From Macrostomum hystrix (Eukaryota; Animalia; Platyhelminthes): a stretch of 64,000 nucleotides of DNA. Below are positions 6,001-55,388 of the stretch, piece after piece. The notes below the pieces were generated by a model, which was not told the origin of the DNA, ran no database searches, and saw nothing but the letters and a program-made list of their open reading frames with translations. Every line of letters starts with the position of its first letter. The stretch's first letter is position 1. Position numbers and translations under genes: made by a program. The DNA lies in assembly GCA_950097015.1 (NCBI GenBank), contig CATNEN010000029.1, positions 7,006,001 to 7,070,000 of the forward strand, written 5' to 3'.

Positions 6001-7693
6001 TCCTCCAGCAGGGACTTGGAAGCCTTCCGATTCGGGCTGGCCACATCGGCGTAGACCTCCTTCACCTCGCGAATCTGAGCATTCGTTCGCGTCATGAAGA
6101 TCTCAATGAGGGCCTGCTCATCCGTGCCCAAGCCGTAGATGGCCTCCTTCACCGACCAAGCGTCGTAGATTGCTGGCTGCACAAAGCAGGCCATGACGGT
6201 TTCGCGAAAGTCGCCTGACAATTCGCTCTTGATGTCGGCGATGAGGTCGCGGCCGTACATAGTTTTGAACATCTCCTTGAGCCGTTGACGCTGGGCGTTG
6301 CACCGAGTGGCCACCACGTGGATGATGGCGTCCTCGTCTGTGCCCAGACCCTTCATGGCCTTGCGCAGGTACTCGCAGTCGGCCTCCGGGTCCCACGGCT
6401 TCCCGGCCAGATCCTGGCTGCGGTCCTTCCTGTAGAAGTCCACCACAGGATCCTCAGGCGGATAGTTCCCGAACGGCTTCACCGTGCCCTCGGTGATCTC
6501 GAAGGTGCCGGACACGGATAGGCGGCGCATCAGCTCGTCGACAAACATCCTCTTGATCTCGGCCTTCAATGTGTCGCTCTTGGCGACCTCCTCCTGGGGC
6601 GGCGGCGCCGGCTGCTCGAGTTGAGAAAGAGGAAGAGTTGTAAGGATGAGAGGGATTTTAGAAATGGGAAGGATTGTAGGGGATGGGAGGGATGGATAGA
6701 TAGATGTGAGATAGATATTGCAGGAGGGCTGCTAGCAGTGGCACATCATTTGGTGACACTAGACCTGCAGCCAGCGAGAAGGCTATTCTGCCCATTCCGC
6801 TGACTCCTGAGCACACACGCACACAGATACTGTACGCAGGCACACTGCTCACACATGTGTGTACATCTGCCCTGACTTTCTCATCGTTGGGCCGTGTACA
6901 CTTTCACTGTGCCATGGAGGTTAGGCACCAATGGCGTAAATTGCACGACACGACAAGCCCCCAAGCCTTCTTCTCCGCGGCTGCGCCTTAAATGAATGTG
7001 ACCTCGCCGCGGAGTCGAACTTAGGGACCTTGGCACGTGAGGCAAATGCGTGCAAATGCAAATGAGAGGCCCAGTTTGACATATTTATTCAGTTTGAGGC
7101 CTACCGGAGCACTCGGTGACTGCATAGCCGCTTGTGGTGCCTCCTGCCTGCCAGCGGACATCATCCGCTGCTGCTCAGCCGCCATAGCCGCCATCTGGCG
7201 CTGCATCTGCTGCATGGCGTGCATCTGCTGGTCGTAGATCTGCGTGTTCATGTGGTTGATGTAGGAGCTGTATGGCATGGCCTGTGGCTCCACTGGAACA
7301 GCCACTGGCACCTGGAAATGGGTTGGCGTCGAAGAAAATTCCATCATCAACTGGATGAAAGCGTCTTGGAGTTATTTTTTTCGTGAGCATACCATCTGAG
7401 GCTGGGCGCCGTATTGCTGGTTCATCTGCTGCACTGCTGGCACCGATTGGAAGGAGGCAAAGGCGTGGCTCTGCTGCCAGCCAAGGCCAGATCCTACGGC
7501 TGTTGTTCAGGGCTTGTTTTTTAAGATTACTGGTCATTGCATAATTATTTTAAAACTATCGAAAAAACCGCTACAAAAACTATTTCTTACCCTGACCATA
7601 CGGTTGGTTATAATTGACATTGTAGGACGAATTCATTGAACCATATGCGTTCTGTCCAAACACTCCGCCAGTAGGAGGGTAGTTGCTTCCATA
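3080..7693 (-). CDS. Annexin (invertebrate group-B type, A7/A11-like long N-terminus), 8 exons assembled, start codon unresolved
   Basis: Exons (minus): 7591-7693, 7393-7499, 7105-7350, 5943-6611, 5097-5216, 4863-4994, 3654-3842, 3080-3205. All introns are GT-AG and phases are compatible; the total is 1692 nt = 563 aa + TAA. Four annexin repeats are present: MKGLGTDEDAII..SELSGDF, IYGLGTDEQALIE..GDTSGNF, GEDRWGTDEETF..RETSGDY and MKGLGTDDKTLIRIIVSRAEIDM..DDTSGDYKKLLQALVGKD*. The N-terminal exons read YGSNYPPTGGVFGQNAYG.. and QQMHAMQQMQRQM.. The four core repeats are certain; the three 5'-most exons are less so. Confidence 0.95.
3411..3600. repeat. Degenerate ~21-nt C-rich minisatellite (ATACACCCACCTCACTxCTCC) in last annexin intron
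   Basis: Repeated ATACACCCACCTCAC cores between exons 3080-3205 and 3654-3842. Confidence 0.85.
5300..5880. repeat. 22-nt pyrimidine-rich minisatellite (CAATCTCCCTCACCCTACTCAT) in annexin intron
   Basis: The unit is read directly and fills most of intron 5217-5942. It explains the plus-strand ORF 5255-5971, which has a 22-aa periodicity. Confidence 0.95.
6826..7060 (-). mobile_element. tRNA-derived SINE, family B, in annexin intron
   Basis: High identity by eye to 20158-20420 (GTGTACATCTGyCCTGACTTTCTCATCG.., CCAAGCCTTCT..CCGCGGCTGCGCC) and to the reverse complement of 56090-56255. The minus strand has a B-box-like GTTCGACTCC. Confidence 0.8.
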
Positions 7694-18265: not shown

Positions 18266-19522
18266 GGCAGAATTAGGAAAGCTGCTGAAAAATCTTTCCC
18301 ATGGTACAGCATTGAAAGGATACCTTAGTGCTGTCCACAGCTGTTCTAAAATGGATGAAACTGTTGAGCCACAGATTGTCGGACAATCTAAAAGGAATCA
18401 AGTGGACCATTCGCTGCTTAAGCAACTAAGCAACAATTGAGGATCATGCATGGTGGCTGGCTAAATTCCTAGTTGAAATAGTCAAAGCGGATGAGAAATT
18501 GTTTTTCTAAAGATTTTCAAATCACTTTCATTTCGTCAATCGGCTTTGGTCGCACCGATTACAGATGCCAATCACACGATTATGTAATCGAAGAGGGTCG
18601 TTAAATTTTACAAATTATGCTATTATATGTTCCTTTCCTTTTTTATAACGCAAAAATGCTGCTATATTCACTCTAACTCGAGGATCATATCAATTCCACA
18701 CCAAAAGAATGATAGCTAACAGTTGCTAAGCGGGTTCTAACAGGTCTAGTGGGTCATGTGTGACTGCAGTCTGGTTTTCATCAAACCATCGAATGCCTCT
18801 ACTAAATACTGTAGCTGAATAGCAATTTAAATTGGTTCGAAAATGTAGAAATCTGTGCTTTCTTAAACAAAGAAGTAAAACACATTGAAGCTCAGGTCAG
18901 TGTTAAGTATTTTTTTAGTTTTTACAGACATACATCAAATATATATCATAATATTTATTATGTGTAACATAGATATGCATTGCTTGTACACATTCGGAAA
19001 GCTGCTTACACCATTTTTTAAGCTTGTTGATGCGCCGTTAACACAAATTTTGGGGGGGAAGCAAGAAAACTACAATTAAATAAAATTGTACCCACTTAAA
19101 ATAAGCACGCGTTTTCGCTTTTCAGCAAGACAAACATCAACGAATATTGAGATTTAGTAGGTGCAGCCTATTAGAAACTAGTCCTACACAGTGAGTTTGC
19201 TTCTAAAAGCAGCTGTGACTCAAATTGACACGTCCCAAACATTGGAGGTTGCAATCAGCTTAGAAGAACATTGAAAAGTGCAGAATAAGAGCGAATTAAG
19301 GACAGTTAGCGGACAGACAGACGACAACTAGTTCACTAGGATAGAGCATCTTTGTCAATAGTGGTTTAATCTCAACTTATACATTCAGAAGTTTCAGAAC
19401 CAGAATGAACTATCATTGTTTAATACAGCCTTTTCTAGTATTGCTTGCATTTGACAAGGCGTGCTTGATTTCAGCCATAGACAAAAGCGTGTTTTCTGTT
19501 CACCACTGCTCAACGTGCGCTC

Positions 19523-22500
19523 TTAGCAGGAGGCCTGTGAAAATGAGAGGCGCCTCTGCCGCGAGGCGATTCCGGTCAGAGCTTGTTGGCGAGAGTCCGT
19601 TGCGTCATCCACTATGCTCAAACACTGCTCAGAATCTTCGTCGATCTCCTTCAACGAAATCGGCGACCTCATAGGGTGGGCAGCGGCAACGCTGACGGAC
19701 AGGTTCAGAGGCGACGGTAGCTGGTTGCCAGCTTCGCAAGAATTGGGAGTCCAGCAGTAGCGAGCCGACTTCCTCCGATTCCCGACATCCGGCGCGACCG
19801 TGTCGGCGGCGTTCGGAGCTGCGTCGGCATCTTCGAATGACGCTCGGCGCTTTCTGATTCCGTCCTCGGCTGGGTGCGACTGAAGTGGGAGGCGAAGGAG
19901 GAACATTTTATAGGATGTGCGTTATCATTTCAAATTTACCAATGTACTTCTTGAGGTATTCGGGGAGTTTTAGCCTAGTGAATGGGGCATTCTACTCACA
20001 CTTAAAGGTCGGGGTTCTATTCCCGACTCCACCGGAACAATTCGTGTCCACTTAAACACTGCAAGACAACTTAACTCTGCGTTGCTTCAGTCCACTCAGC
20101 TGTTAAATTGGTACCAGCATCAGCTGAAGGTGGGTGTGGCGTCAGGCCCCCAGTACATAATAATAATAAGAATAATATTATTATTAAACAAATACTGTAC
20201 GCAGGTACACACTCCCCCAGGTGTGTACATCTGTCCTGACTTTCTCATCGTCAGGCAGTGTACACTCTCACTGTGCCTTGGAGGTTGGCCCTCGAGGTCA
20301 TAAACTTGCACGACCAGCCCACCAAGCCTTCTCTCCGCGGCTGCGCCCCAACTTAATGTGGCCTCGCCGCGGAATCAGGCGCGAGAGGCAAACGCGTTGA
20401 ACGCTCTGCCACTGACCTCCTGCCCCGCAGTCCATGGACTGAACAGGCTGTACACAGCGCTCACCTGCTCCATGTGGCGCCGCAGCTGCCTCGGGCTGGG
20501 GCAGAGCAGGCCGCAGCTCGGGCATGGGCACATGTCCTGCTGGCCTTCCTCCGATGCGCCGTTGCAGCCGCTGCCAACTACAGCTGACTCGCTCCCGGAG
20601 CTGGGCGATGTTGGCTGGTGCTGGTGCTGGTGCTGCTGGAGCTGCTGCTGGAGCTGCTGGCCAGGTGTACCAATGCCGTGCTTGTTGAGCCGGTGTACGC
20701 GCAGGAAATACTTGTTGCACACCTCCTTGCCGCAGACGTCGCAGCGAATGCGCTGCTGAGCTGGCGAGCCGCCGGTGGAACGCGAGACGGCGGCTGCGGC
20801 GGCGGCGGCGGCTGCCGTTGGTGACAACACGGCAGAATTGCCGGTGGGTGACGACGCAGTCATAGAGGATGAAGCTGTCGGAGACACTGCGATGGGATCA
20901 GTAATGGGGGAGAAAGAAGATAGAAACTCCAGTTTAGAACGCACGATAGGATGTGTTTTGCTGGAACTCTGGGCTAGGTAACTAAGGAAGCCAGGGTAAC
21001 TAAGGAAGCCAGGGTAACTAAGGAAGCCAGGGTAGCTAAGGAAGCCAGGGTAACTAAGGAAGCCAGGGTAACTAAGGAAGCCAGGGTAACTAAGGAAGCC
21101 AGGGTAGCTAAGGAAGCCAGGGTAACTAAGGAAGCCAGGGTAACTAAGGAAGCCAGGGTAACTAAGGAAGCCAGGGTAACTAAGGAAGCCAGGGTAACTA
21201 AGGAAGCCAGGGTAACTAAGGAAGCCAAGGTAACTAAGGAATCCACGGTAACTAAGGAATCCACGGTAACTAAGGAATCCACGGTAACTAAGGAATTTTA
21301 ACTAAACAAAGCGATTGACTGTAATATTTGAAGAGGAATTTTTTAGCAAACAAAACGTTGAAGACAAACGACGGTTATAAGAATTCTGTAACTAACCCGC
21401 CATCAGGTAAATTTGTGTCTCTAAACAGCTGCTCGGTTCGAATCGTCAACTAGGCTATCGGACAAAAGAGAGAATGTATCCGCGCGCGCTTCAAAACCTC
21501 AGCCATCCACTTCCTTGGCAATTACAGCATCGGCATGGGATCTAGAGGAGAGGGGACAATAGGCCTCAAAAATTGATACTCTTGTACCGACGAGTTCGGC
21601 CCTTTCTTCTATTCTCCGTTGGCTTTAAAAAACAACAGCCAAAAGGCGGATCAAAAAGTTAAGGAAATTCCATCTCGTTGGCAAACGGAATTTCTTTTAA
21701 TCTACATGCAATTTCTTTTACTTTGCTTTTTTATTTGTTTTTAGCTTTCGAGGCCGGGCAAAATGAGGGGCGAAAGGCTGGGGCAGGAAAGTTGGGAATG
21801 AAAGGGGAAAAACTTTATTAGAAGATGAAAAACCCTGATGGCATATGATGCGCCTGCTCAACCCCCGGTGCCTCTTTGACTACCCCATCCTTTTTGTCTT
21901 CTGCTTCAATTGAAAGAAAGAGTCGGACAAAACAGGCGCTCCGAACTTCACTCAATGGCAACATTGCAACTTTCTTTCGTGCTCAAAGAAAAGGTAAAAG
22001 GCATGAGAATGGGCTGCCGGGTTGCTAGCGAAGGCAAAGCAGGCAACTCAGCCCAACCTGGAGGAAGCTGGGGAAGCTGGACAGAAACAAAAAAAAGTAA
22101 AAATTTTTATGATTGAAATTCCCTGAGTCACGTCTGTCCCCACACGGCCTGTGGAATAGCCTCTCTTTGGAACAAAAAAAGATTTTGTTAGAGGAAATAA
22201 GGCCAGGAACAGAAAAGTTAAAAGCGAAGACACAAGCTCAAGCTAAAACAAGCTTGAATGCATGGACGCTTTTGTCCGAGGACAGGGGAAGCTATTATTA
22301 TTGACTAAGTCAGGGCTGTATTTCACCTCAACAAAGCTTGTTGCAGCGTTAAAAGAAGCTATAGGTTTCATTGCTCTGAAATTGATGCCAATAAATTTGG
22401 CATCCTAAAGATGGGATAATCTATTTATTTGAATAGTTTTTATCAACGGTAAATATCGATACTCTTTCAGCTTGAGCAGCTTAAACGCTTGAGCAGCTCA

Positions 22501-24556
22501 AACATAGAGCATTCTTCTACGCTCTGTTGAGCTAACTTAGTAAAGACTAGCCGTTAGCCTGTGGCTTCAGTTCATTTTTGTGGTAATTTTTCTCAATTCT
22601 GCCCAAGTTACATGCGTGCCATTTCGTGAGGAGCAACTGGTCCGTGTTAAAAAGCAACTGCTAGTATTTTTTTATCAGTTGTCGATCCAGTTTCTCTAAT
22701 CCAGATGTGGAAGACAATGACAATGTTTAGTTGGCATGCAGTTGGAGCACGTTCAAACTTGAGCATAGTCAAAGTCTCTCTCTCTCTCTCGACTATCGCC
22801 TAATGCTGTAATAACCGCTTTGCTTGAGGAAAATTGTCCCCACCAAGCTTAAGTGAAGGAAGACCGATTCGGAAGCAGCAGTCTATGGAAGGAGGTTCTA
22901 GCTTTGTGGTTAGATCGTTGGAATCACGACTTGAAAGTCGGGGGTTCGATTCCCGACTCCACTGAAAAAAAATTGTGTCATTTAGCAAAACGCTTAACTG
23001 GGCATTGCTTCAGTTCACCCCAGCTGTTAAAATGGGTACCAGCATTAGCTAGGGGTAATTGAGAGTGGGTGAGGCGTCCCCCAGTCCATGGACTGAACAA
23101 TAGCTGCGGCTGGGCTGTCGGCTGCACATCTGGCCCAATTGGGGCAGGTGTAATCAATTTATTATTATTATTATTAGAGTCTATGGAAACATGCCCATTG
23201 TAAACACGAGTGCCGAGGTTAGCAAAAGAGAGATTGCAACAGCCCAGTGGTCGAGAGGTCGCGAGTTCGCATTTCAGCCCGGGGAAAACAATTACCTGTC
23301 TCCTTAAGCAAGAAATTTAACTCCCTGGTGCTTTGTTTCTTACCAACGGGCGTCTCAAAAGCCGCGCTCAAAGGTCGAAAAGCTGATGCCGATGTTGTTG
23401 CTATGGCAACGCGTTGTCCATTGACAGCAGAAGCCACCGGCAGAGTCGGAGGCGGCGGTGGCGGCGGCAGCGGCGGCTGCAGTGCCCGAGGGACTCCGTG
23501 AACTTTCTCTTTGTGCGTGCGCAGAAAGTACTTGTTGCACACCTCCTTGCGACAGATGTCGCAGACAACTCGGTCGGCCAGCTTGGCTGCCACCATGGAG
23601 GACTGGAAGGCGTCCAGCTGGTGATGCTGCTGTTGATAGTGCTGATGCTGGAGCTGGTGACGAGCTGCAGAGGACACCAGACTCAAAGCCTGGCTGTGCT
23701 CAACTGAATCCGAAGCGGTCGATGACGAATGCGGCGGCGGAGGCGGCGGTGGCGGAGGCGGCAGCGACAGAGAAACCGAAGTCGGCAGAGGCGGCGGCGG
23801 CGGGGGCGGCGGTGGCGGAGGCACAGCAGCAGCAACGGCGGCCAGCTGGGCATAAGGGCTCATCAAGGCAGCTGGTCCCAGAGCCAGCGGGAAGGAGCCT
23901 AGAAGAAAGGGATTTAATCCCATAGCGGCTAGCAGAGGATTCGCCATTGACAGATCCTGAGAATGTGGATAGTACTGTTGCTGAAGTTGCTGCTGCTGTT
24001 GCTGAAGTTGCTGCTGCTGTTGCAGCCGCTTGTTCCTGTGCTGATGCTGCTGAGCCTCGACGCCGGAGGTCCTAGAAGTTGGCGCAGAGGAGGCGCCCGG
24101 AGCTGCTTGAATGCCGTGCACATCGGCCTTGTGCTTTCGCAGGTAATATTTGTTGCAGAAGAGCTTCTCGCAGTACTCGCAGTAGCTGTCCGGCTGCCCA
24201 GCTTCGTGATGCCCAACAGACGCAGTCGACGCCGAGGCCGCAGTTGCCACTTTCGCTGAATTGTCGACGGCAGCAGCGGCAGCTGCCGGCGGTTCATTGA
24301 CTCTGCTCGGATTGGTCTGCTTGCGTCGACCCGCAACCCCGATCTGCATTGTTGCCATGGAAACCGGCGAGTCGCCTAACTCGTCATTGTCCGCGTAGTT
24401 TTCTTCGTCATCCTTGTCACCATTGGCGTCGTTGTTGTTTTCAGCCGCTGCTTCATCTGGCTTGACGACTCCGGCGTTGCCGGGGCTGGCCAGGTGAGCG
24501 GGAAGAATGCCTCCGTAGCTGGCAGACAGGGCACTCGCGGCTCTCAGGTACCAATC

Positions 24557-32511: not shown

Positions 32512-33084
32512 TGTGATGATCGGCGGCTGCTGATGCTTTGGATTTCAGGAAAAAATATCCGAATTCTTTTTTTTTACAGTTACTTTGTGCGGTCAGTTTC
32601 CTAGCAACAAAAATATCTATCCACCTTTCTTATTTTATAGATCGTGTTTTAATCTCAAGTTGGCTTGTATTTAGTATTTTTCAATCCCAAACTCCCCTCC
32701 TCAACTGAGGTGGCTCGGAGGCGGGTGGGTGTGTCAAGCGGAGTAAAATCATTGGCTAGGAAGACCCCACTGACTTAACTGCAGTGAATCAGCCGAAACT
32801 TAGTGGCCACCGCCACCCCACACCTTTCACAGCAGCGCACTGAACAGTTGAGTGTGTAAATGCGTGTTTTTCTTTCACCAATCACCCACCCCACCACCCT
32901 TCGATGTTCCATGCTGTGATTTCATACACCAATCAACAATAACAGGATCCACAAAGCGTCAAGACATTGAACTCTTCATCGTTTCATTATTTCTACACAG
33001 AAGTAAAAACACAATCCATTATATTAGGAAATAGGCAGTAAAAACGACAAGAAACTATTTTTATCCGAACCAGGCCAACGCTCT

Positions 33085-35370
33085 CTTATGCCATCTCCCA
33101 TTCTCTCTTATGCCATCTCCCATTCTCTCTCTTATGCCATCTCCCATTCTCTCTTATGCCATATCCCATTCTCTCTTATGCCATCTCCCATTCTCTCTTA
33201 TGCCATCTCCCATTCTCTCTTATGCCATCTCCCATTCTCTCTTATGCCATCTCCCATTCTCTCTTATGCCATATCCCATTCTCTCTTATGCCATCTCCCA
33301 TTCTCTCTCTTATGCCCTATCCCATTCTCTCTTATGCCATCTCCCATTCTCTCTCTTATGCCATATCCCATTCTCTCTTATGCCATCTCCCATTCTATCT
33401 CTTATGCCATATCCCATTCTCTCTTATGCCATCTCCCATTCTCTCTCTCTCTTATGCCATCTCCCATTCTCTCTCTCTCTTATGCCATCTCCCATTCTCT
33501 CTTATGCCCTCTTCCATTCTCTCTCTCTCTTATGCCATCTCCCATTCTCTCTTATGCCATATCCCATTCTCTCTTATGCCATCTCCCATTCTCTCTCTCT
33601 CTTATGCCATCTCCCATTCTCTCTCTCTCTTATGCCATCTCCCATTCTCTCTTATGCCCTCTTCCATTCTCTCTCTCTCTTATGCCATCTCCCATTCTCT
33701 CTTATGCCATCTCCCATTCTCTCTCTCTCTCTTATGCCATCTCCCATTCTCTCTTATGCCATCTCCCATTCTCTCTCTCTCTTATGCCATCTCCCATTCT
33801 CTCTTATGCCATATCCCATTCTCTCTTATGCCATCTCCCATTCTCTCTCTCTCTTATGCCATCTCCCATTCTCTCTCTCTCTTATGCCATCTCCCATTCT
33901 CTCTTATGCCCTCTTCCATTCTCTCTCTCTCTTATGCCATCTCCCATTCTCTCTTATGCCATCTCCCATTCTCTCTCTCTCTTATGCCATATCCCATTCT
34001 CTCTTATGCCATCTCCCATTCTCTCTCTCTCTCTTATGCCATATCCCATTCTCTCTCTCTCTTATGCCATCTCCCATTCTCTCTTATGCCCTCTTCCATT
34101 CTCTCTCTCTCTTATGCCATCTCCCATTCTCTCTTATGCCATCTCCCATTCTCTCTCTCTCTTATGCCATATCCCATTCTCTCTTATGCCATCTCCCATT
34201 CTCTCTCTCTCTCTTATGCCATATCCCATTCTCTCTTATGCCATCTCCCATTCTCTCTCTCTCTTATGCCATCTCCCATTCTCTCTTATGCCATCTCCCA
34301 TTCTCTCTCTCTCTTATGCCATCTCCCATTCTCTCTTATGCCATCTCCCATTCTCTCTCTCTCTTATGCCATCTCCCATTCTCTCTTATGCCATCTCCCA
34401 TTCTCTCTCTCTCTTATGCCATCTCCCATTCTCTCTTATGCCCTCTTCCATTCTCTCTCTCTCTTATGCCATCTCCCATTCTCTCTTATGCCATCTCCCA
34501 TTCTCTCTCTCTCTTATGCCATCTCCCATTCTCTCTCTCTCTTATGCCATATCCCATTCTCTCTTATGCCATCTCCCATTCTCTCTCTCTCTCTTATGCC
34601 ATATCCCATTCTCTCTTATGCCATCTCCCATTCTCTCTCTCTCTCTTATGCCATATCCCATTCTCTCTCTCTCTTATGCCATCTCCCATTCTCTCTTATG
34701 CCATCTCCCATTCTCTCTCTCTCTCTTATGCCATATCCCATTCTCTCTCTCTTATGCCATCTCCCATTCTCTCTTATGCCATCTTCCATTCTCTCTCTCT
34801 TATGCCATCTCCCATTCTCTCTTATGCCATCTTCCATTCTCTCTCTTATGCCATCTCCCATTCTCTCTTAGGCCATCTTCCATTCTCTCTCTCTCTTATG
34901 CCATCTCCCATTCTCTCTCTCTCTAATGCCATCTCCCATTCTCTCTCTCTAATGCCATCTCCCATTCTCTCTCTCTCTAATGCCATCTCCCATTCTCTCT
35001 CTCTCTAATGCCATCTCCCATTCTCTCTCTCTAATGCCATCTCCCATTCTCTCTCTCTCTAATGCCATCTCCCATTCTCTCTCTCTAATGCCATCTCCCA
35101 TTCTCTCTCTCTAATGCCGTCTCCCATTCTCTCTCTAATGCCATCTCCCATTCTCTCTCTAATGCCATCTCCCATTCTCTCTCTAATGCCATCTCCCATT
35201 CTCTCTCTCTAATGCCATCTCCCATTCTCTCTCTCTAATGCCATCTCCCATTATCTCTCTCTAATGCCATCTCCCATTCTCTCTCTCTAATGCCATCTCC
35301 CATTCTCTCTCTCTAATGCCATCTCCCATTCTCTCTCTCTAATGCCGTCTCCCATTCTCTCTCTCTAGCT
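33085..35370. repeat. Compound pyrimidine-rich array: TATGCCATCTCCCATT plus a variable (CT)n tract
   Basis: Units are ~22-34 nt and differ in CT number. The CTTATG variant switches to CTAATG after ~34920. It generates the 570-630 aa pseudo-ORFs. Confidence 0.97.
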
Positions 35371-42654: not shown

Positions 42655-45000
42655 ACAAGTCACGGAAAGGAGGCTATAGACAGTCACGGGAAGGAGGCAG
42701 TGGACAGTCACGGGAAGGAGGCAGTGGACAGTCACGGGAAGGAGGCAGTGGACAGTCACGGGAAGGAGGCAGTGGACAGTCACGAGAAGGAGGCAGTGGA
42801 CAGTCACGGGAAGGAGGCTATAGACAGTCACGAGAAGGAGGCAGTGGACAGTCACGAGAAGGAGGCAGTGGACAGTCACGAGAAGGAGGCAGTGGACAGT
42901 CACGGGAAGGAGGCTATAGACAGTCACGAGAAGGAGGCAGTGGACAGTCACGGGAAGGAGGCTATAGACAGTCACGAGAAGGAGGCAGTGGACAGTCACG
43001 AGAAGGAGGCAGTGGACAGTCACGAGAAGGAGGCAGTGGACAGTCACGGGAAGGAGGCTATAGACAGTCACGAGAAGGAGGCAGTGGACAGTCACGAGAA
43101 GGAGGCAGTGGACAGTCACGAGAAGGAGGCAGTGGACAGTCACGAGAAGGAGGCAGTGGACAGTCACGGGAAGGAGGCTATAGACAGTCACGAGAAGGAG
43201 GCTATAGACAGTCACGAGAAGGAGGCTATAGACAGTCACGGGAAGGAGGCTATAGACAGTCACGGGAAGGAGGCTATAGACAGTCACGGGAAGGAGGCTA
43301 TAGACAGTCACGGGAAGGAGGCTATAGACAGTCACAGGAAGGAGGCAGTGGACAGTCACGGGAAGGAGGCTATAGACAGTCACGGGAAGGAGGCTATAGA
43401 CAGTCACGGGAAGGAGGCTATAGACAGTCACGGGAAGGAGGCTATAGACAGTCACGAGAAGGAGGCAGTGGACAGTCACGGAAAGGAGGCTATAGACAGT
43501 CACGGGAAGGAGGCTATAGACAGTCACGGGAAGGAGGCTATATAGACAGTCACAGGAAGGAGGCTATAGACAGTCACGGGAAGGAGGCTATAGACAGTCA
43601 CGGGAAGGAGGCAGTGGAGAGGCACGGGAAGGAGGCAGTGGACAGTCACGGGAAGGAGGCAGTGGACAGTCACGGAAAGGAGGCTATAGACAGTCACGAG
43701 AAGGAGGCTATAGACAGTCACGAGAAGGAGGCAGTGGACAGTCACGAGAAGGAGGCAGTGGACAGTCACGAGAAGGAGGCAGTGGACAGTCACGAGAAGG
43801 AGGCAGTGGACAGTCACGGAAAGGAGGCTATAGACAGTCACGAGAAGGAGGCTATAGACAGTCACGAGAAGGAGGCAGTGGACAGTCACGAGAAGGAGGC
43901 AGTGGACAGTCACGGGAAGGAGGCAGTGGACAGTCACGGGAAGGAGGCAGTGGACAGTCACGAGAAGGAGGCAGTGGACAGTCACGAGAAGGAGGCAGTG
44001 GACAGTCACGGGAAGGAGGCAGTGGACAGTCACGGAAAGGAGGCTATAGACAGTCACGAGAAGGAGGCTATAGACAGTCACGAGAAGGAGGCAGTGGACA
44101 GTCACGAGAAGGAGGCAGTGGACAGTCACGGGAAGGAGGCAGTGGACAGTCACGGGAAGGAGGCAGTGGACAGTCACGAGAAGGAGGCAGTGGACAGTCA
44201 CGGGAAGGAGGCAGTGGATAGTCACGGGAAGGAGGCAGTGGACAGTCACGAGAAGTAGGCAGTGGACAGTCACGGGAAGGAGGCAGTGGACAGTCATGGG
44301 AAGGAGACAGTGGACAGTCACGGGAAGGAGGCAGTGGACAGTCACGGGAAGGAGGCAGTGGACAGTCACGGGAAGGAGGCTATAGACATTCACGAGAAGG
44401 AGGCAGTGGACAGTCACGAGAAGGAGGCAGTGGACAGTCACGAGAAGGAGGCAGTGGACAGTCACGAGAAGGAGGCAGTGGACAGTCACGAGAAGGAGGC
44501 AGTGGACAGTCACGGGAAGGAGGCAGTGGACAGTCACGGAAAGGAGGCAGTGGACAGTCACGAGAAGGAGGCAGTGGACAGTCACGGGAAGGAGGCAGTG
44601 GACAGTCACGGGAAGGAGGCAGTGGACAGTCACGGGAAGGAGGCAGTGGACAGTCACGAGAAGGAGGCAGTGGACAGTCACGGGAAGGAGGCAGTGGATA
44701 GTCACGGGAAGGAGGCAGTGGACAGTCACGGGAAGGAGGCAGTGGACAGTCACGGGAAGGAGGCAGTGGACAGTCACGGGAAGGAGGCAGTGGACAGTCA
44801 CGGGAAGGAGGCAGTGGACAGTCACGGGAAGGAGGCAGTGGACAGTCACGAGAAGGAGGCAGTGGACAGTCACGGGAAGGAGGCAGTGGACAGTCACGGG
44901 AAGGAGGCAGTGGACAGTCACGGGAAGGAGGCAGTGGACAGTCACGGGAAGGAGGCAGTGGATAGTCACGGGAAGGAGGCAGTGCTAGGAGAGTCACGGG
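42655..45000. repeat. 24-nt purine-rich minisatellite (CAGTCACGGGAAGGAGGCAGTGGA), ~97 copies
   Basis: Read directly, with GCAGTG/GCTATA and GGG/GAG variants. The in-frame unit explains the VDSHGKEA and GQSREGGS ORFs. Confidence 0.97.
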
Positions 45001-45609
45001 AAGGAGTGATCTGCATAAATATTTTATTTTCCGGGTGACCCAGAGAATAGGAAAAAAAACTCATACATTTTTTTCATAATAATTATTTTGTAATAAATAC
45101 ATTTCATTTTGAACTCACAACAAAAATTTGCAATCAGTTTCCAGGCCAAAATAGATTCTTTGAGTTTTATTCAGCCGGAAATCAAATCAAAGAGTTCTAC
45201 AGGCCAATTAGCACTATTCGGCCAGCAGCTGTGCATAACTGGCAACCGCCTGTTCTGGTCGCCTTAAGTCTTTTGGATTTTTTAATTGCTTCAAACTGTC
45301 CCCACCCCCGAATCCCGAAGAAAATTGCGCTACCCATTCGCGTTTCTGGCTCTTCTTCGGCACCTAGAAATAGGTAAAATCTCAATTGAGCAGGTGCGTT
45401 TTGGGCCGATGCAAGAGGTAAAGTTGCTCCGATTGACAATTTTAACAAAATTACTTCGCGAATTGGGAATAGACTGCTAGCACGTTCGGGAGTTTCGCAT
45501 CTCTGTGAGCCATCTCCACAAGCTAGATTAGGGGAATATGTTTTTTGCCAAAATGCCGACGTCCCGTTTCCCGATACGCAAAACCATATCCCTGATCCTC
45601 ACTCAATAC

Positions 45610-46732: not shown

Positions 46733-47169
46733 ACATAGCATAAAGTCGAAGGGGTTCTATGCTGTGCTAACTTTCTTACCGCAAAAAGCTTCATCGAGTC
46801 GAAGTTTTAGTTGAGAAATTCGACTCAGTTTTACTGTTAGGACAAAAAGCAGACCAGATGCTTGCGTTCAAATATTTCTGACAACATTCTTTTGGTCTTC
46901 TGACCATATTGTGCAGTTTGATGTCACTAGTGTGTCTTTAAGTGTTAGGAGTGGGTCATCATGTGTCAGTAGCAGCTCATTAGTGTTAAGTTAAGGCAAC
47001 TCAGTTAGGTTTGATGTCTGAGGAAAACTCTCAGAGCCTTAGCTGGCCCAATCAATTGAATATATATTTGAGTGCGACGTGCGCGTGAGAGGGACAATCA
47101 GTTCGTGAACTGTCTAACGATGTACACAAGACCGCGATACATAACAATTAGATGTCGCGAATTAGTCAT

Positions 47170-47600
47170 TAGGTATCAGGAGTTGGTCATTAGGTGTAAG
47201 GAGTTGGTCATTAGGTGTCAGGAGTTGGTCATTAGGTGTCAGGAGTTGGTCATTAGGTGTCAGGAGTTGGTCATTAGGTGTCGCGATTTGGTCATTGGGT
47301 ATCAGGGGTAGGTCATCATGTGTCAGGAGTAGGTCAGGGTGTTAGGGGTAGGTCATCATGTGTCAGGAGTAGGTCAGGGTGTTAGGGGTAGGTCATCATG
47401 TGTCAGGAGTAGGTCAGGGTGTCAGGGGTAGGTCATCATGTGTCAGGAGTAGGTCAGGGTGTTAGGGGTAGGTCATCATGTGTCAGGAGTCGGTCAGGGT
47501 GTCAGTGGTAGGTCATCATGTGTCAGGAGTAGGTCAGGGTGTCAGTGGTAGGTCATCATGTGTCAGGAGTAGGTCAGGGTGTTAGGGTTAGGTCATAAGG
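47170..47600. repeat. 21-nt minisatellite (GGTCATTAGGTGTCAGGAGTT) evolving into a 40-nt dimer
   Basis: Same family as 49960-50480. Confidence 0.9.
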
Positions 47601-47928
47601 TGTTTGGATACGGATCAGAATATGTCCAGTTTAAAATTTCACCTTTTGAAGTAGCCAAGCGTTTATAAACAAATTTAGCCATTGAACTAACCAGTATTTT
47701 ATTTGTTTGGGTATAATTTTAGTGGCGTTCAAATTTTAATCAAGGGCTTTGAGCTAAGTGTGATTTTAATTATCGGCTGTGAATAACTAAATCGTACGTA
47801 ACGCCTCACTAATGCTTAAAAAGCGGATTGAGATTCTAGCCAAAGCAGAGAAAACTATTGTAGTTAATTAGGAGAATTTTAGGAATAGGTAAAGTCCGAA
47901 AAACACAATTAATGTCCTGAAGATGAGC

Positions 47929-47929
<1 letters not shown>

Positions 47930-47963
<34 letters not shown>

Positions 47964-48110
47964 CTATGGCAGACAGACAGACAGACAGACAGACACTATG
48001 GCAGACAGACAGACAGACAGACGACAGACAGGCAGGCAGGCAGGCAGGTTGGCAGACAGACAGGCAGGTAGGTAGGCAGACAGACAGAGACAGACAGACA
48101 GACATGCGAA

Positions 48111-48142
<32 letters not shown>

Positions 48143-48154
48143 CCAAGGTCAAGG
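47930..48154. repeat. (GACA)n/(GGCA)n and (AAGGTC)n microsatellites abutting the NPLTG-gene stop codon
   Basis: Read directly. The AAGGTC run ends at the base adjacent to the minus-strand TGA. Confidence 0.93.
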
Positions 48155-51100
48155 TCAGCATCTATTGCCGCCCCGTTGTTCCCGGTGCACATCAAAGCTG
48201 GCCAGATTGTCGCCGGTCAGAGGATTTCCTCGGGCTGACGACGGCGTTGGCGGAGGCCGCTTCTCGCCGAGGCAAAGTACAAATTGCTGGGAGCCTTCGC
48301 CAGTAACTGGGTTGCTGCGGTCTGCGAAAGGAGAAACGAAAAGTTAGGCCGAAAGCAGGCCGAAACGTAAAGTTTTTTACGAACGTATACTTTAGATCTA
48401 TTCAGTAGCTTTCGTTAGATCTATTCAGTAGCGTTCGTTAGATCTATCGAGTAGCTTTCTGTAGATCTATAGGTTAGTTTTCTGTAGATCTATTGAGTAG
48501 CTTTCTGTAGATCTATTGAGTAGCTTTCTGTAGATCTATTGAGTAGCTTTCTGTAGATCTATTGAGTAGCTTTCTGTAGATCTATTGAGTAGCTTTCTGT
48601 AGATCTATTGAGTAGGTTTCTGTAGATCTATTGAGTAGGTTTCTGTAGATCTATTGAGTAGGTTTCTGTAGATCTATTGAGTAGGTTTCTGTAGATCTAT
48701 TGGTTATCTGTGGTTAGCGGACTCACCAGTCGGCTGAGCAGGCGCCGCCCCGACCCGAGTTTTTTCTTCTACGCTGAGGGTGAATGCCTGGCAGTTTGTG
48801 CCTGTCAGCGGGTTTCTCAAACTGTCTGCAGAAAAAGAATTGAGATCTATACTGCAACAGGATTTTTAAAGAAATTATTTGGCTTTTAAAACAGGTTAGC
48901 ACCCTTCCATCAGGTGCTTCTCTAGATGCATCCTTCAGGTATTGAAGCTTACTCAGATAACACTTCAGTAAAATCCCTCAGGTAACACTTCAGAGACATT
49001 CTTCAGGCAATAATATTTCGTTGGCATTCCTCAGGTAATACTTCAGGCTAATTCTTTATCAGAGCTGTCAAAATCCTCACCCGCTGGTGGCACCGCTGGC
49101 GGTCTTTGCTTAAACTCGGCACAATTATAAGTGTAAGTGGCACAGTTGTCACCAGTTAGCGGGTTGCTGATGGCAGTTGTCTGGCTGACTGAGCAACTGG
49201 AGCCTGATTCTCGAGTCACGCAATTCTCACCGGTCAGAGGATTTCCGCCTGACAGGATAATCGTTTGGGAGACATTACGGCTCCTAGATAATATAGAACA
49301 GCAGATTTTTAAGAAATTTTAATACACTTTTTGTCGTTGTTTTAATTTATTCTGGCTTTTTGTATTTCCTACAAAGTACTTCTTAATATAATTCTGTTCA
49401 TAGAGAAACATCATTTTTCTAGAAAACTTGCTTTTACGAAAGGACTTATGAAATTCTTTGTAGTTTCTTCATTTTTAGTCTTTGTCTTTTTAAAAGTCTA
49501 TGCCAGAAAAAGACAGATTATCTTATTTTAGCGCTCAAATCATACTACTATCGAGATAATTCTCAGTAGTGCATACAGCATGCGCACTGTATTTCATACC
49601 TGAAGTGGGTCTGCTACCGGATTTCACTCGCCGCTCATTGAGTTTCTCAGAAATGGTGTAGCTGCTGCAGTTCTCGCCAGTCAGTGGGTTTGACGCTCTC
49701 TCTGAAATGAAATATCAGGAAGAAAACCTTTTATTTAAAAAGGCTCTGAAGGAAGATGTTAACTTAGCACTATAGGCTCCCAAACTTCCTTACCCAATAG
49801 ATCCGGCGGTCTAGCCGCGGTCTGAGCCCTTCTTAAGTCCCGACTGATGTCGTAGCTCGCCAAGCCATCGCCGGTCAGCGGATTCGCTCGGATCCGTAGC
49901 CGGTCTGAGGGAAGGGTTTGCAGTCTACGCACCTTTAGTCTTGCAGGTGTCAATAGTTTGGTGTCAGGAGTAGGTCATTAGGTGTTAGGAGTGGATATTT
50001 AGGTGTCAAGAGTAGGTAATTAGATGTGTCAGGAGTAGTTCATTAGGTGTCAGGAATATGTCATTAGGTGTCAGAAGTAAGGTCATTAGGTATCAGGAGT
50101 AGGTCATTAGGCGTCAGGAGTAAGGTCATTAGTTGTCAGAAGTAGGTCATTAGGTGTCAGGAGTAGGTCATTAGGTGTCAGGAGTAGGTCATTAGGTGTC
50201 AGGAGTAGGTCATTAGGTGTCAGGAGTAGGTCATTAGGTGTCAGGACTAGGTCATTAGTTGACAGAAGTAGGTCATTAGGTGTCAGGAGTAGGTCATTAG
50301 GTGTCAGGAATAGGTAATTAGGTGTCAGGAGTAGGTCATTAGTTGTCAGAAGTAGGTCATTAGGTGTCAGGAGTAGGTCATTAGTTGTCAGAAGTAGGTC
50401 ATTAGGTGTCAGGAGTAGGTCATTAGGTGTCAGGACTAGGTCATTAGTTGTCAGAAGTAGGTCATTAGTTGTCAGGAGTCGCATATACTCGCACATCGAC
50501 ATGCATGTAGGAAAATTATAAATACAACTGAATAACTTTTTTTTCTGTTATCGTGATTGCAGGTGAAATATTTTTCTAGATCAAATTCAGTGTCGCCATG
50601 GCAACCAACCGGAGTCCGTGGCGGGCAGCTGCCGCAGTCGACCCGCATAGCCGTAGATCGGATCCCATTCCACGCCGAAATCGCCGCTTCCCGCAATGGG
50701 ATTTCGAATCGCTGCGGATGATCAACTGCTGTTGAGTGAGACTTGCATGTACTTTAGCAGAAATACTACCATCCCATATTCTTGCGCCTACCCTGCTCAA
50801 TCCGAGTCTTCCCCGGACGTCCATTCGGTCGGAGATCCTCTGGGTAGTCGTCTGCTGTCGTTATCTCCGACTCCAGCGAATTCTGAACTAAATGTTATAA
50901 ACGAATTGATCACGCAGGTAACACAGCTTCATTCATCTATTCAATATTTATTCACCTTTATCTTTACAAACAAGTTTCCTACTGATGGATGATAAGATCT
51001 CACGCATTCGAGTCACTCACAGACAGTGCTGCTGCTGTTGCTGCTGTTGTTGTTCCTTCGAGAATCGATTCTAGCGAACATCTTCACTTCGTCTCCTAGA

Positions 51101-52234
51101 TTTCCCTCTCCCAAAATGGGATTGCGACCGTCTGAATTAGGAGGCGAAAGTTTTTATCGAGATTTTAATTGGATAACTGCATGAGCGTGTTAAACATGAT
51201 ATAGGAAGTATGGGATTACGGGAACTGGAGACCCGGTGTTTTTGATCAGGTACAGGACTCAAGACATGAGATCCGGTTACTCAATACATGATATCAAGTA
51301 GGGGACTCGGGACATAAAATGAGGTATCGGTCATGTAATCCGGTAAATCAGGACTCGAGATCATGAGAACAGGTAACTCAGGACTCGAGATCATGAGAAC
51401 AGGTAACTCAGGACTCGAGATCATGATAGCAGGTAACTCAGGACTTGAGATCATGAGAACAGGTAACTCAGGACTCGAGATCATGAGAACAGGTAACTCA
51501 GGACTCGAGACCATGAGAACAGGTAACTCAGGACTCGAGATCATGAGAACAGGTAACTCAGGACTCGAGATCATGAGAACAGGTAACTCAGGACTCGAGA
51601 TCATGAGAACAGGTAACTCAGGACTCGAGATCATGATAGCAGGTAACTCAGGACTTGAGATCATGAGAACAGGTAACTCAGGACTCGAGATCATGAGAAC
51701 AGGTAACTCAGGACTCGGGATCATTAGAACAGGTAACTCAGGACTCGAGATCATGAGAACAGGTAACTCAGGACTCGGGATCATTAGAACAGGTAACTCA
51801 GGACTCGAGATCATGAGAACAGGTAACTCAGGACTTAAGATCATGAGAACAGGTACTTCAGGACTCGAGATTATGAGAACAGTTAACTCAGGACTCGAGA
51901 TTATGAGAACAGGTAACTCAGGCTCGAGATCATGAGAACAGGTAGGTAACTCAGGACTCGAGATTATGAGAACAGGTTATATTATTTCCTCTTAGCTAAG
52001 GTTCGAGCTCCTGACCACTGAGTAGAACAGCTAATTCAGCTGAAACATATAATATAAGTTTATACCCGGCTTTCGAGTGGCTTTTCGCGGCACCTCCTCG
52101 CCTCTGTCCGCCTCCGGGGCTCCCCAGCAGTCGGTTGAATGTCTTGCACTCCTACTGGTCAGCCGGCCTGTGATGGGATCGATCGCTGCTGCTTGATTGA
52201 TTTGGCATGTGAGGAGGGTGGGAGGTAACTGCAG
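48155..52234 (-). CDS. Uncharacterised NPLTG-repeat protein (11 x [N/D]P[L/I/V]xG), 9 exons, ~374 aa, start unresolved
   Basis: Exons: 52066-52234, 51021-51131, 50792-50887, 50610-50711, 49794-49904, 49600-49701, 49081-49248, 48727-48825, 48155-48321. All eight introns are GT-AG and phase 1. The total is 1125 nt, open to TGA at 48155-48157. Motifs: IDPITGR, RNPILGEG, RNPIAGSG, WDPIYGY, ANPLTGDG, SNPLTGENC, GNPLTGENC, SNPLTGDNC, RNPLTGTNC, SNPVTGEG, GNPLTGDN. Confidence 0.88.
48400..48700. repeat. 23-nt minisatellite (TAGATCTATTGAGTAGCTTTCTG) in last intron of the NPLTG gene
   Basis: The period of 23 was checked at 48481/48504. Confidence 0.95.
49960..50480. repeat. 21-nt minisatellite (GGTCATTAGGTGTCAGGAGTA) in NPLTG-gene intron
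   Basis: Read directly. It gives the LLTPNDL pseudo-ORF. Confidence 0.95.
51345..51975. repeat. 30-nt minisatellite (CAGGACTCGAGATCATGAGAACAGGTAACT) in NPLTG-gene intron
   Basis: Read directly. It gives the MRTGNSGLEI / MISSPELPVL pseudo-ORFs. Confidence 0.96.
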
Positions 52235-52559
52235 CTGTACGACTTGTGCGAAAAAAAAAATTATGAAGTCAACAGTAGCGAGAAAAATTCCCAGAACAAT
52301 TTTTTGGGCTGAACGTGGGCAAACTGTTTGGAGCATTGGGAAAAAATCAATAGAGGTTGGCACTCGCGGCCAGCTGTGCCGCGGCGATCCTAAGCTCGTT
52401 TCTGAATAAGAAAATATCCCATGGGACCAAATTTTAAGTTTTATGAAATAAAATTCATAATAAACAGAACCTGTCCAACAGGTATTTCGACTGCGTGCAC
52501 TTTGAACGTGTAAAACCAATACTATATAACAGATGTTTGGCACTCAACCGGTAAACCTA

Positions 52560-52930
52560 TCTTCCCAACAGGTATTGACACCTAGCCTGTCCTGCAAACA
52601 GCTGAGCCCTACTGTCCAACAGGTATTGACGCCGGTCCTGCAAACAGCTGAGCCCTACTGTCCAACAGGTATTGACGCCGGTCCTGCAAACAGCTGAGCC
52701 CTACAGTCCAACAGGTATTGACGCCGGTCCTGCAAACAGCTGAGCCCTACTGTCCAACAGGTATTGACGCCGGTCCTGCAAACAGCTGAACCCTACAGTC
52801 CAACAGGTATCGACGCCGGTCCTGCAAACAGCTGAGCCCTACAGTCCAACAGGTATTGACGCCGGTCCTGCAAACAGCTGAGCCCTACTGTCCAACAGAT
52901 ATTGACACCTGTCCTGCAAACACTGTCCAA
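52560..52930. repeat. 46-nt minisatellite (GTCCAACAGGTATTGACGCCGGTCCTGCAAACAGCTGAGCCCTACT), ~7-8 copies
   Basis: The period of 46 was checked at 52614/52660. There are no unique spacers. Confidence 0.93.
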
Positions 52931-55388
52931 CGTACGGTATTGCTGAGCTGGTACTGTAAACTGCTGAGAGAATTAAAAAATTATTTTACGAGCGTAATTT
53001 GCAAATGTACTGATAGACAAAAGCTGACAGTGCAATAAATACAAGCAAAAATACTGCAAAATACCTCGACTCATCTTCTAAGTTTTTCCGAGAAATCTTA
53101 ATTATCTTTTAGACTATTACTAATAGAGGATAACTATACGCTGCTAAAGTCAATGTCAAAGTCAAAGTCAATCTGATAGCTCGTTGAGTAATTATGTTTC
53201 AATTTTTTTAAGGAATTAATTTGCTTGGTAATCGCTTCTCACTCAAGACAAATATGTAAATCGTGCTAGATTTCAAACGTCCCGTTTTATTCTGCTATAT
53301 ATAATTTACTGACGAATGTAATGTGCCCTCGCACACATGTCCAATAGTCGCGCGCGCTAAAAAATTGCTTGAAGTGTCCAGGAAACAGCTGGAGTGCAGG
53401 ATCAAAAAGTAAAAAAGTAAAATAATTGTTAAAAAAATAATTTAGCCTTCTTAATTCAGGCGATTGGGAGCTTGGTCGTCTAGGAGTCACGACACCCTGG
53501 ACACCCATTCCTACTCCACAGTTGCTGGCAAAGAGTTAAGATTGTATGCGTAGGGTTCTAAAGGCAACTCTTCTATATTACCTGAAGCAAGGCGCATTAG
53601 CAAAGGCGTATATCTTTTGCAGATACTTTTTACAATTCATTTATCAAAATTTAGAACTCTTTAATTACTGTTATAAGTTTGGTTGCACTTTTTGGCACTA
53701 CTTCAATCATCAAATCATATAATCTACATCTACATGCACCTTATGCATGTCCCAATGACCACTAGAAGTAGAACTCTATCCATAGTGGTCCTTGACATGT
53801 TTCCGTACGCATACGTCATGCATTCATGTACACGCTACTTCACAATGCAACCGGTGAGAAAAGTGCTTCTAAATCAATGACACTAATTTGATACTCAAAT
53901 GCAAGATATGACGACACAAACATATCGAGCTTAGCTAGCATTTTTTAATTTGGATTTTGGAATTCTAAATCTTGATTTTGGCCTGCAAAGATTTCTACAC
54001 TTTTGTGCCTCTGTGACTGGAAACCGGAAATATATAGTTGCGTTAAAATATAATATAATCCCAGGGGGAAAGAAATTACGGGCTTACTCGATGTTCTTAA
54101 GTGTTTTTAAGATGTTCTTAAGACTTACTATTATTAGCTACCGTAATATTCTCTTGCATTATTTGCAGCCCTTTATTTTTTCAATATTTTTGCTGTTAAA
54201 ACAAACAAAGATGTGTTGTTTTGTGTTTAATATTTGTTTAAAACGAATATATCTTTTGTAGCGTTTTAAACCCGTATTTTGTAATTTAGCTTTTTAAACA
54301 TGGAAAAGAATAGATTTTCGTGCGATTTCCTTTTTTGGAATCGCAGAATGGCATAAGTTTGTCTTCCTGTTCTTTTGTAAATCTAACATAAAAGTAATCC
54401 TAAACGTGTACTTCAATATTGTGGCGATGTTTCAGACATATCCCAATAATAATATTAGGGCCTACTTTGGAAACAGTTGTAGCAGAAGTAGACTTGCTGT
54501 TGCTGGGAGTATAGTGGTAGACGTAGACCCATCATCCAATTATTCAAATTACTATTCTTAGACAGACTTCTTGCTTCTAAAAACAAAGCTTTTATTTAAC
54601 TTTGCACCACCATTGACACCATACGGACATAATTTTTCTTTTACTTTTAGACGAGCTGCTTAGATTAGTCTTAGACCTAGGGTCTTCATAATGCATAGGC
54701 CCCTATCTATTCTGTCAGTATGAAAAATTGGCTAGTATAGGTATAGTCATGTACAAAAAAGGTAGCTAGGCCTAGTCCTATCCTATATTATGAGCTTTTT
54801 TATAGCAAAATAAACTTTCAATATCAAGTGTTTATTTATTCAGCCACAGTTTTTTATAAAAAAATATTTGTAATGTTTTAAATATTTTTATAGGAATATA
54901 GACATACATAACTATTTTTTAACAAACAACATAAACCAAAGACAAAATTTTTATGTCAATTAGCTATTTTTGAAATAAAATATTGCTTTAATTTTTGGCT
55001 ATTATTGACAAAAAAATAATAATTGAAATAAAAAAGTAAATTAAGGACCATTGGATTCTGGAAGGACAATTCTTTGTAAATAAGTCCAAACCAAATTTTT
55101 CATAATGAGTACACTACACAGAATTAAGCTGAGATCTAAATTGTTGTCTAGATATGACAATTTCAGCCATAAACCTTTTTTGTGTACAGTTTTTGCTTTT
55201 TATGTTTATCTTTTTTGATCTGGATCTTTTCATCTTTTTTGCTTTATTTATTCAATTATTTCTACTATGCAAGTGCTAATTTAATTTCATTAAAGAAATA
55301 ATGTTCTTGTTCATTCATACCACATTGGTGTTATTAGCATTACTAGGGCCTACACACTGCAACATTAGACATAGCTAATGTATCCATA

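Follow-up and report, generated by a model that had tools for sequence, protein, structure and literature searches.

A stretch of 64,000 nucleotides of the Macrostomum hystrix genome (assembly GCA_950097015.1, contig CATNEN010000029.1, positions 7,006,001 to 7,070,000; hereafter the window, numbered from its first letter) carries on its minus strand, at 48155-53155, short GC-richer islands with minisatellite arrays between them (units of 23, 21, 30 and 46 bp). The question raised by this locus is whether the islands are the exons of one gene and, if they are, to which kind of protein they belong. An earlier note, made from the letters alone, had proposed a nine-exon gene for a protein of about 374 aa with 11 NPLTG-type repeats, and had guessed at a disordered microtubule or ciliary-axoneme binder of an apparently undescribed family. 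When the islands were joined at AG/GT sites, a 1125-nt open frame was rebuilt from nine exons, with every intron GT-AG and of phase 1, and this frame was without a start codon.

Two public RNA runs from one study were then compared with the window from 47700 to 53600 (5901 letters). The fraction of sampled words of the 4080-base stretch of the earlier model that occurred in the two runs was 0.26 and 0.23, not far from the exon fraction of 0.28 there. Each run gave one spliced contig (X1 and X2; 1165 nt in one run, 1198 nt in the other) and a single splice form. The contigs joined 48321 to 48727, 48825 to 49081, 49247 to 49599, 49701 to 49794, 49904 to 50610, 50711 to 50792 and 51131 to 52066, so that 405, 255, 351, 92, 705, 80 and 934 bases were skipped at the predicted borders. 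All the skipped pieces read CT..AC on the plus strand, and the RNA is therefore minus-strand RNA. Masking of the low-complexity Asn/Ser-coding part of exon 3 kept junction 50887|51021 out of the list; it follows from contig arithmetic, as the exons on either side are separated by exactly 111 nt in X2 and by 96+111 nt in X1. Spliced contigs from both runs thus confirm the predicted junctions, and the gene is real, spliced, expressed and previously unpredicted.

The 5′ end of the earlier model did not stand. Its first exon (52234-52066) has no ATG, and the RNA support ends at 52191, from where the contigs join to 53065 across 873 bases. Exon 1 (53065-53155) consists of the 5′ untranslated region (UTR), which reaches at least to 53155, and the first 10 coding bases, with the ATG at 53074-53072 and a phase-1 donor after 53065. 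The codons before this donor read ...TAG AAG ATG AGT CGA G|gt, i.e., an in-frame TAG lies shortly 5′ of the ATG, and no second ATG was found in the 81 nt of covered 5′ UTR. Spliced-leader trans-splicing, considered as a source of the ATG for the former exon 1, was ruled out, since in the contigs an upstream exon with an ATG of its own is joined in cis. Hence, the frame, the GT-AG borders and the phase-1 introns of the earlier model were retained, whereas its first exon was replaced: the corrected gene has ten coding exons and nine consecutive phase-1 introns, each of which cuts a codon after its first base, and its 1092 coding nt encode 363 aa.

The remaining exons carry the repeats, hereafter modules. 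After a very short N-terminus (MSR), module 1 (DPITG) follows directly in exon 2 (52066-52191), which the contig pieces cover from end to end. Exon 3 (51021-51131) encodes module 2 (NPILGEGNLG) and then an Asn/Ser-rich tail; in the contigs, exons 2 and 4 lie exactly 111 nt apart, and the low-complexity part at 51022-51060 is masked. The degenerate module 3 (NSLES) lies in exon 4 (50792-50887, the extent of the contig piece) and is collinear with an RNP...LRPxxRP segment of the homologues described below, and module 4 (NPIAGSGDFG..WDP), in exon 5 (50610-50711), is the best-conserved N-terminal block in the family alignment. Modules 5 (NPLTGDGLASY) and 6 (NPLTGENCSSY) occupy exons 6 (49794-49904) and 7 (49600-49701), the latter with a joint at 49599 (cut +1) in the contigs. 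Exon 8 (49081-49248) holds modules 7 and 8, two NPLTG copies, exon 9 (48727-48825) holds module 9 (NPLTGTNCQAF), and exon 10 (48113-48321) holds modules 10 and 11 (NPVTGEG and NPLTGDN), so that seven exons carry one module and two exons carry two. The stop codon is at 48157-48155, and the 3′ UTR enters an (AAGGTC)n microsatellite; the contig pieces cover 48165-48321, and the X2 contig continues 52 nt further, in the masked repeat.

All 11 motif copies of the earlier note were present: seven strict NP[LV]TG, three variants (DPITG, NPILG and NPIAG) and the degenerate NSLES. The seven C-terminal modules follow the pattern NP[LV]TG-[EDT]-[NG]-[CLS]-x-x-[YF], and the spacing N-P-x-x-G-x5-[FY] was found in 6 modules of the protein. 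A module spans about 25-40 residues, and each is followed by a basic Pro-rich linker. A six-frame motif scan of the window located the seven strict copies and the one DPITG on the minus strand, all inside the gene; the sole other match in the 64 kb was a CPLTG, attributed to chance. The plus-strand "ORFs" (open reading frames) with SPV[ST]G are the same DNA as the minus-strand motifs, read antisense, as the earlier note had supposed. The motif copies draw on all four codons for Pro and on three for Thr, and where residues are identical the codon is the same in only 43 % of cases. This codon diversity argues for conservation at the protein level, as claimed before, and, judged by it, the module copies are old and have been kept as protein.

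The product has a mass of 39 kDa, an isoelectric point of 8.4 and a grand average of hydropathy (GRAVY) of -0.85, and is rich in Arg, Ser, Gly, Pro, Ala and Thr. The highest hydropathy over 19 residues was 0.08, so that neither a signal peptide nor a membrane segment is present, in agreement with the low hydrophobicity noted earlier. Exon pieces, the repeat alignment and homologues served as queries for the large searches, structure prediction and the ESM Atlas. The AlphaFold2 model of the closest full-length homologue, Macrostomum lignano P0031, had a mean predicted local distance difference test (pLDDT) of 43 and a predicted template modelling (pTM) score of 0.14. On this model and the hydrophilic composition, the window protein, which is basic and hydrophilic, is probably intrinsically disordered, as the earlier note had it.

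We next consider whether the protein has relatives. A profile built from the 11 modules of the window only was searched against 1.84 billion representative proteins (E up to 1e-3) and gave 28 matches. The top ones, with 7-9 matched stretches each and E from 5e-32 to 5e-19, came from M. lignano, Echinostoma, Schistosoma, Dicrocoelium and the nemertean Tubulanus, and the nemertean Lineus appeared lower down the list. With blastp, the window protein was collinear with M. lignano P0002/P0029 over 366 residues (39-40 % identity, E 1e-73). A second profile (A2), made from seven of the flatworm and nemertean matches, retrieved 25 members in Macrostomum, trematodes, cestodes and Tubulanus. The window's own protein was absent among these members, and the gene is therefore missing from that collection. 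From 78 flatworm copies, the consensus of the C-terminal module was N-[PTI]-[LVI]-[TS]-G-E-N-[CVL]-x-[ST]-[YF]-x-[VI]-x-x-E-E-[RK], and the N-terminal module type reads R-[DN]-P-I-x-G-x-G-[DN]-[LF]-G.

The window protein belongs to this family by both architecture and gene structure: it is collinear over its full length, with RDPIxGxG-type modules followed by NPxTGEN-type modules, and its gene has one module per exon with introns after the first codon base (nine of phase 1). The members, e.g., M. lignano A0A1I8HD70 and BOX15_Mlig011212g1, the "surface protein PspC" of Echinococcus multilocularis, those of Schistosoma and Fasciola, Tubulanus LOC141906064 and Lineus LOC135494118, likewise are collinear, have the two module types in this order and one module per phase-1 exon, lack a Pfam domain and are predicted to be disordered. 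They differ in that most of them carry a conserved LPxxDxETGxKxRVV leader, which the window protein lacks, and in the number of core motifs, which by a common motif scan is 5-12 per member and 10 in the window protein (with its 11 modules). In the gene of M. lignano P0031 (L001) the exon borders are the same module borders, with codons split, mostly with one extra base before the GT; these shared borders indicate that the modular phase-1 structure predates the split of the two species or of the paralogues. The closest M. lignano counterpart exists only as the C-terminal part (residues ~1357-1570) of a chimeric 1906-aa model, A0A1I8I8J6 (P0006), where it is fused to a reverse transcriptase; several of its modules are nearly identical to those of the window and several exons are missing, and it looks like a mis-annotation in the M. 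lignano genome.

With these data, the suspicion that the locus is a transcribed but non-functional remnant, or an artefact of assembly or annotation, can be weighed. It could be entertained because the surrounding DNA is full of minisatellites and the protein is missing from the databases searched. The 1092-nt frame, however, is intact over ten exons, and its splice sites, all of them canonical, are in use in both runs. Two letter differences from the window were seen in exon 8 of the X1 contig, and the one whose effect was computed (49175, Thr244) is synonymous. M. lignano has the modules in the same order and the introns in the same positions, and the codon diversity points to protein-level constraint. 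We consider a remnant or artefact very improbable.

The claim of novelty could be kept in part. The gene itself was missing from the protein collections searched and its relatives are uncharacterised, but the family is already in the databases, with collinear homologues across Platyhelminthes and Nemertea. A Pfam scan of the nine exon peptides and 14 flatworm and nemertean homologues gave nothing meaningful; borderline matches to TagH_SH3-like, 2C_adapt, DUF6451 and TF_Otx extended over 10-40 residues of the motif and were put down to chance. In the ESM Atlas, exon 8 met viral glycoprotein G fragments with a score of 0.62, below the reliable range, and these were discarded. The literature on the flatworm "surface protein PspC" and on Smp_055220, a candidate orthologue, yielded one schistosome transcriptome table and no functional work, and in full texts "NPLTG" turned up with sortase and in unrelated peptides only. 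As far as sequence comparison goes, the family is present in the genomes of all major flatworm groups and of nemerteans, where it is uncharacterised, mis-named and without a Pfam model. Among the matches listed, multi-module members occurred only in Platyhelminthes and Nemertea (flatworms, and Tubulanus and Lineus with P0008, P0045 and P0015), a distribution that may fit a flatworm-nemertean grouping or may reflect search sensitivity only.

The names under which the members are filed suggest two different kinds of protein. Many of the A2 members are called "Surface protein PspC", others are unnamed, and two, both from M. lignano, were named automatically as Jupiter or JPT2 in UniRef. If the first name were right, the window gene would encode a secreted or surface protein. 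The name is carried by homologues in Echinococcus, Fasciola, Hymenolepis and Schistosoma, and there are weak motif-level matches to bacterial G5 surface-protein domains and to TagH_SH3-like. The bacterial matches, however, had E of 0.5-1.4 over 6-8 residues, Pfam scans detected no choline-binding, LPxTG-anchoring or other PspC domain, and the protein has neither a signal peptide nor a hydrophobic N-terminus or segment. The PspC name looks like an automatic mis-transfer, and a surface protein is hardly credible here.

The second name is better supported. The profile built from the window alone also matched two beetle proteins, P0021 and P0026, with E of 2e-5 and 2e-4. P0026 scored 31.9 bits with the Pfam model JUPITER (PF17054), above its cut-off of 27; P0021 matched the C-terminus of Jupiter and ends in VPPGGYAHKLW. 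The relatives of both are beetle proteins named microtubule-associated protein Jupiter in NCBI and UniRef, several of them with a precomputed PF17054 match. Across eleven beetle Jupiter proteins, the motifs RNPLTGxG, GNPxLGxGY and R-x-PPGG...LW were invariant. In a profile-profile comparison (hhalign) of the family with beetle Jupiter, RDPITGLG...RNPILGQGN of the former was placed on RNPLTGTGL...GNPLLGVGY of the latter, with a probability of 79.5 % and E 1.5e-5; with a larger family alignment the values were 70.3 % and 4e-5. The family thus has the paired RNP[LI]TGxG and GNPxLGxG motifs, ~20-25 residues apart, that mark Jupiter. A third homologue search returned beetles only, and neither Drosophila Jupiter nor vertebrate JPT was reached among the matches listed; the GNPVTGEG motif of Drosophila Jupiter is given as in the earlier note.

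Insect Jupiter (PF17054) resembles the window protein in being small, basic and disordered; the two module types have their counterparts in its RNPLTGxG and GNPxLGxGY motifs, which keep the order and a similar spacing, and the match is reciprocal between the profiles. It differs in motif number, since beetle Jupiter has one to five such motifs against eleven in the window protein, and in its ends: Jupiter terminates in RIPPGG[YF]S..LW and has an N-terminal VLxPPGG, whereas the flatworm proteins are without PPGG and fall below the Pfam model. The lead to Jupiter given in the earlier note is therefore moderately supported: the repeat profile retrieves bona fide beetle Jupiter and hhalign gives 70-80 %, but PF17054 is not matched and PPGG is absent in the flatworm members. 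Distant homology of the family to Jupiter is, by these comparisons, likely though not established.

The vertebrate proteins JPT1/JPT2 (HN1/HN1L) are also disordered, and in them an aromatic residue follows each of several imperfect N-P-x-x-G repeats, in the same N-P-x-x-G-x5-[FY] spacing as the 6 modules mentioned above. Their core is PPGG, as against [LIV]TG in the window protein, and JPT2 has four repeats. The sequence searches never reached JPT, and the likeness is that of a functional analogy and a possible distant homology. The PPGGK*S repeats of JPT2 are reportedly needed for its localisation to microtubules, and a 13-residue peptide, LNPPGGKSSISFY, is reported to be enough for microtubule association, possibly at the lumenal taxane site (PMC12773733). 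The nemertean Lineus member has an N-terminal VLNPPGGRVSINLFG, which resembles this minimal peptide.

On balance we incline to the reading that the flatworm/nemertean family is a repeat-expanded distant relative of the Jupiter/JPT (HN1) disordered microtubule-associated proteins, and that the window gene is a member of it. Several results weigh against this reading. PF17054 was matched neither by the nine window exon peptides (E up to 10) nor by the homologues scanned, 11 from flatworms and 3 from nemerteans (E up to 1 or 10). In a regular-expression scan, PPGG, the hallmark of Jupiter and JPT, was absent from the window protein and from 21 flatworm members; it was present once in the Lineus member and in all scanned beetle Jupiter proteins but the short P0026. 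The hhalign match spans no more than two short motifs, 33-39 columns in all, and E-values are not well calibrated for disordered sequence such as this. Peptides of the N/D-P-x-T-G type arise by chance in bacterial Ig-like/G5-type repeats, in a viral-type 2-cysteine adaptor and in a hemichordate neuropeptide-like precursor. The AlphaFold2 model was made on the homologue P0031 instead of the window protein, from a shallow alignment of 23 sequences. Finally, the literature searched yielded no experiment, in any species, that ties the family to microtubules.

These points leave room for a different explanation, namely that the family is a disordered scaffold restricted to flatworms and nemerteans, whose NPxTG modules bind, as short linear motifs, some partner that is not tubulin, and that the resemblance to Jupiter arose by convergence on a motif of five residues. 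The unmatched PF17054, the absent PPGG, the confinement of the profile-profile match to two motifs and the occurrence of NPxTG-type pentapeptides in clearly unrelated proteins would all fit it. So would the language-model neighbours, which are other repeat scaffolds: in the ESM Atlas, P0031 was placed with carboxysome CsoS2 at an unreliable 0.70, a match that we rejected as homology and that offers at most an analogy with another disordered repeat scaffold. Convergence has to account, however, for the fact that a profile made only from the window picked beetle Jupiter, with E of 2e-5 and 2e-4, out of 1.84 billion proteins, that both motif types stand in the same order and at similar spacing in Jupiter, and that an N-terminal NPPGG peptide is found in a nemertean member. 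We regard a convergent scaffold as possible, though on the doubtful side.

The remaining matches of the repeat profile, i.e., bacterial DPLSGKG/DPVTGEI repeats, an INPLTGRCI adaptor, the Saccoglossus precursor and an Apolygus zinc-finger protein, were set aside as motif-level or compositional. The hemichordate protein (P0018, Saccoglossus kowalevskii XP_006818319.1) has a signal peptide and repeated KR-QNPLTGDLFTEFG-KR units, looks like a neuropeptide precursor and has only the pentapeptide in common with the family. As the repeat profile did match this precursor-like protein, one might read the window protein as a neuropeptide or propeptide precursor from which the repeats are excised. Such a precursor is most unlikely: the window protein is without a signal peptide, regular dibasic sites flanking the modules and Gly-Lys-Arg amidation signals, and its modules differ from one another, whereas the copies in P0018 are identical.

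If the relationship to Jupiter/JPT holds, each N-P-x-x-G...aromatic module would act as a short, weak tubulin-binding peptide, by analogy with the NPPGGK*S...F/Y repeats of JPT2, and the tandem array would make the protein a multivalent microtubule binder in the manner of tau-type repeats. Tau, MAP2 and MAP4 similarly have tandem modules of ~31 residues with a Pro/Gly turn motif and bind protofilaments multivalently (general knowledge and the discussion in PMC12773733). This is an analogy of architecture only, since the sequences are unrelated, and neither the exon peptides nor the homologues matched the Pfam tubulin-binding repeat. Against the sequences of all PDB chains, a family profile (A4) had no match at E up to 1, and the repeat profile (A1) had only matches to bacterial G5, of 6-8 residues, and one to an azoreductase, with E above 0.5; sequence-only searches of this kind can miss short disordered binders. 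The suggestion of a ciliary-axoneme binder found no backing, as nothing pointed to cilia and no sequence relative was detected in solved structures, axonemal microtubule inner proteins included.

Every internal exon is of phase 1-1, and modules could therefore be added, lost or skipped in frame. By this route, module duplication or skipping might proceed without breaking the frame. The nemertean genes have many predicted isoforms, in line with module skipping, but the two RNA runs show a single form. A bolder proposal, which we think rather unlikely, is that N-P-x-[TG]-G-x5-aromatic is an autonomous tubulin-binding peptide ancestral to both the NPLTG of Jupiter and the NPPGG of JPT. Flatworms and nemerteans would then have built a "poly-Jupiter" by exon duplication, whose 8-12 modules would staple along or inside microtubules, with splicing of the phase-1 cassette exons tuning the valency. 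If true, poly-Jupiter would be a shared derived character for a flatworm-nemertean grouping.

Jupiter and JPT proteins are widely used as microtubule markers and have links to cancer and to NAADP signalling, and only now is it becoming clear how the short motifs in them contact tubulin. A naturally occurring protein with eleven NPxTG copies, mostly one per exon, would offer a clean system to ask whether the motif is the tubulin-binding unit and what valency contributes, and Macrostomum can be made transgenic. The corrected gene model matters also for annotation: the gene is unannotated here and hidden in a chimeric model in M. lignano, and "Surface protein PspC" is a misleading name that has spread across the genomes of parasitic flatworms.

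Four of the introns contain minisatellites that were delimited with Tandem Repeats Finder: a 46-bp array in intron 1 (52585-52922), a 30-bp array in intron 2 (51342-51977), a 21-bp array with the unit GGTGTCAGGAGTAGGTCATTA in intron 5 (49960-50479) and a 23-bp array in intron 9 (48393-48702). A related 21/40-bp array lies just downstream of the gene (47147-47603), so that one satellite family occurs both inside and outside the gene. RNA contigs also overlapped the intronic arrays (52428-52821 and 51119-51640), and a 192-nt contig (51119-51310) crossed the acceptor of exon 3 unspliced; the array-covering contigs could be pre-mRNA, or array copies transcribed elsewhere.

The whole window (1-64000) holds minisatellites of ~25 families, whose units measure 15-70 bp and whose arrays extend over 0.3-2.9 kb (e.g., 397-2521, 15384-18272, 33081-35366 and 42658-45006), and nearly all the long ORFs in the mechanical list are arrays read through and not genes. 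An open frame on the minus strand at 5892-6569 gave a strong Annexin match (PF00191, E 4e-44) and marks an annexin gene ~42 kb away. Two GC-rich open frames on the same strand, 20378-20944 and 23222-24358, gave weak, sub-threshold zinc-finger matches only; one of them, a 379-aa frame that starts with ATG, may be a real exon or gene.

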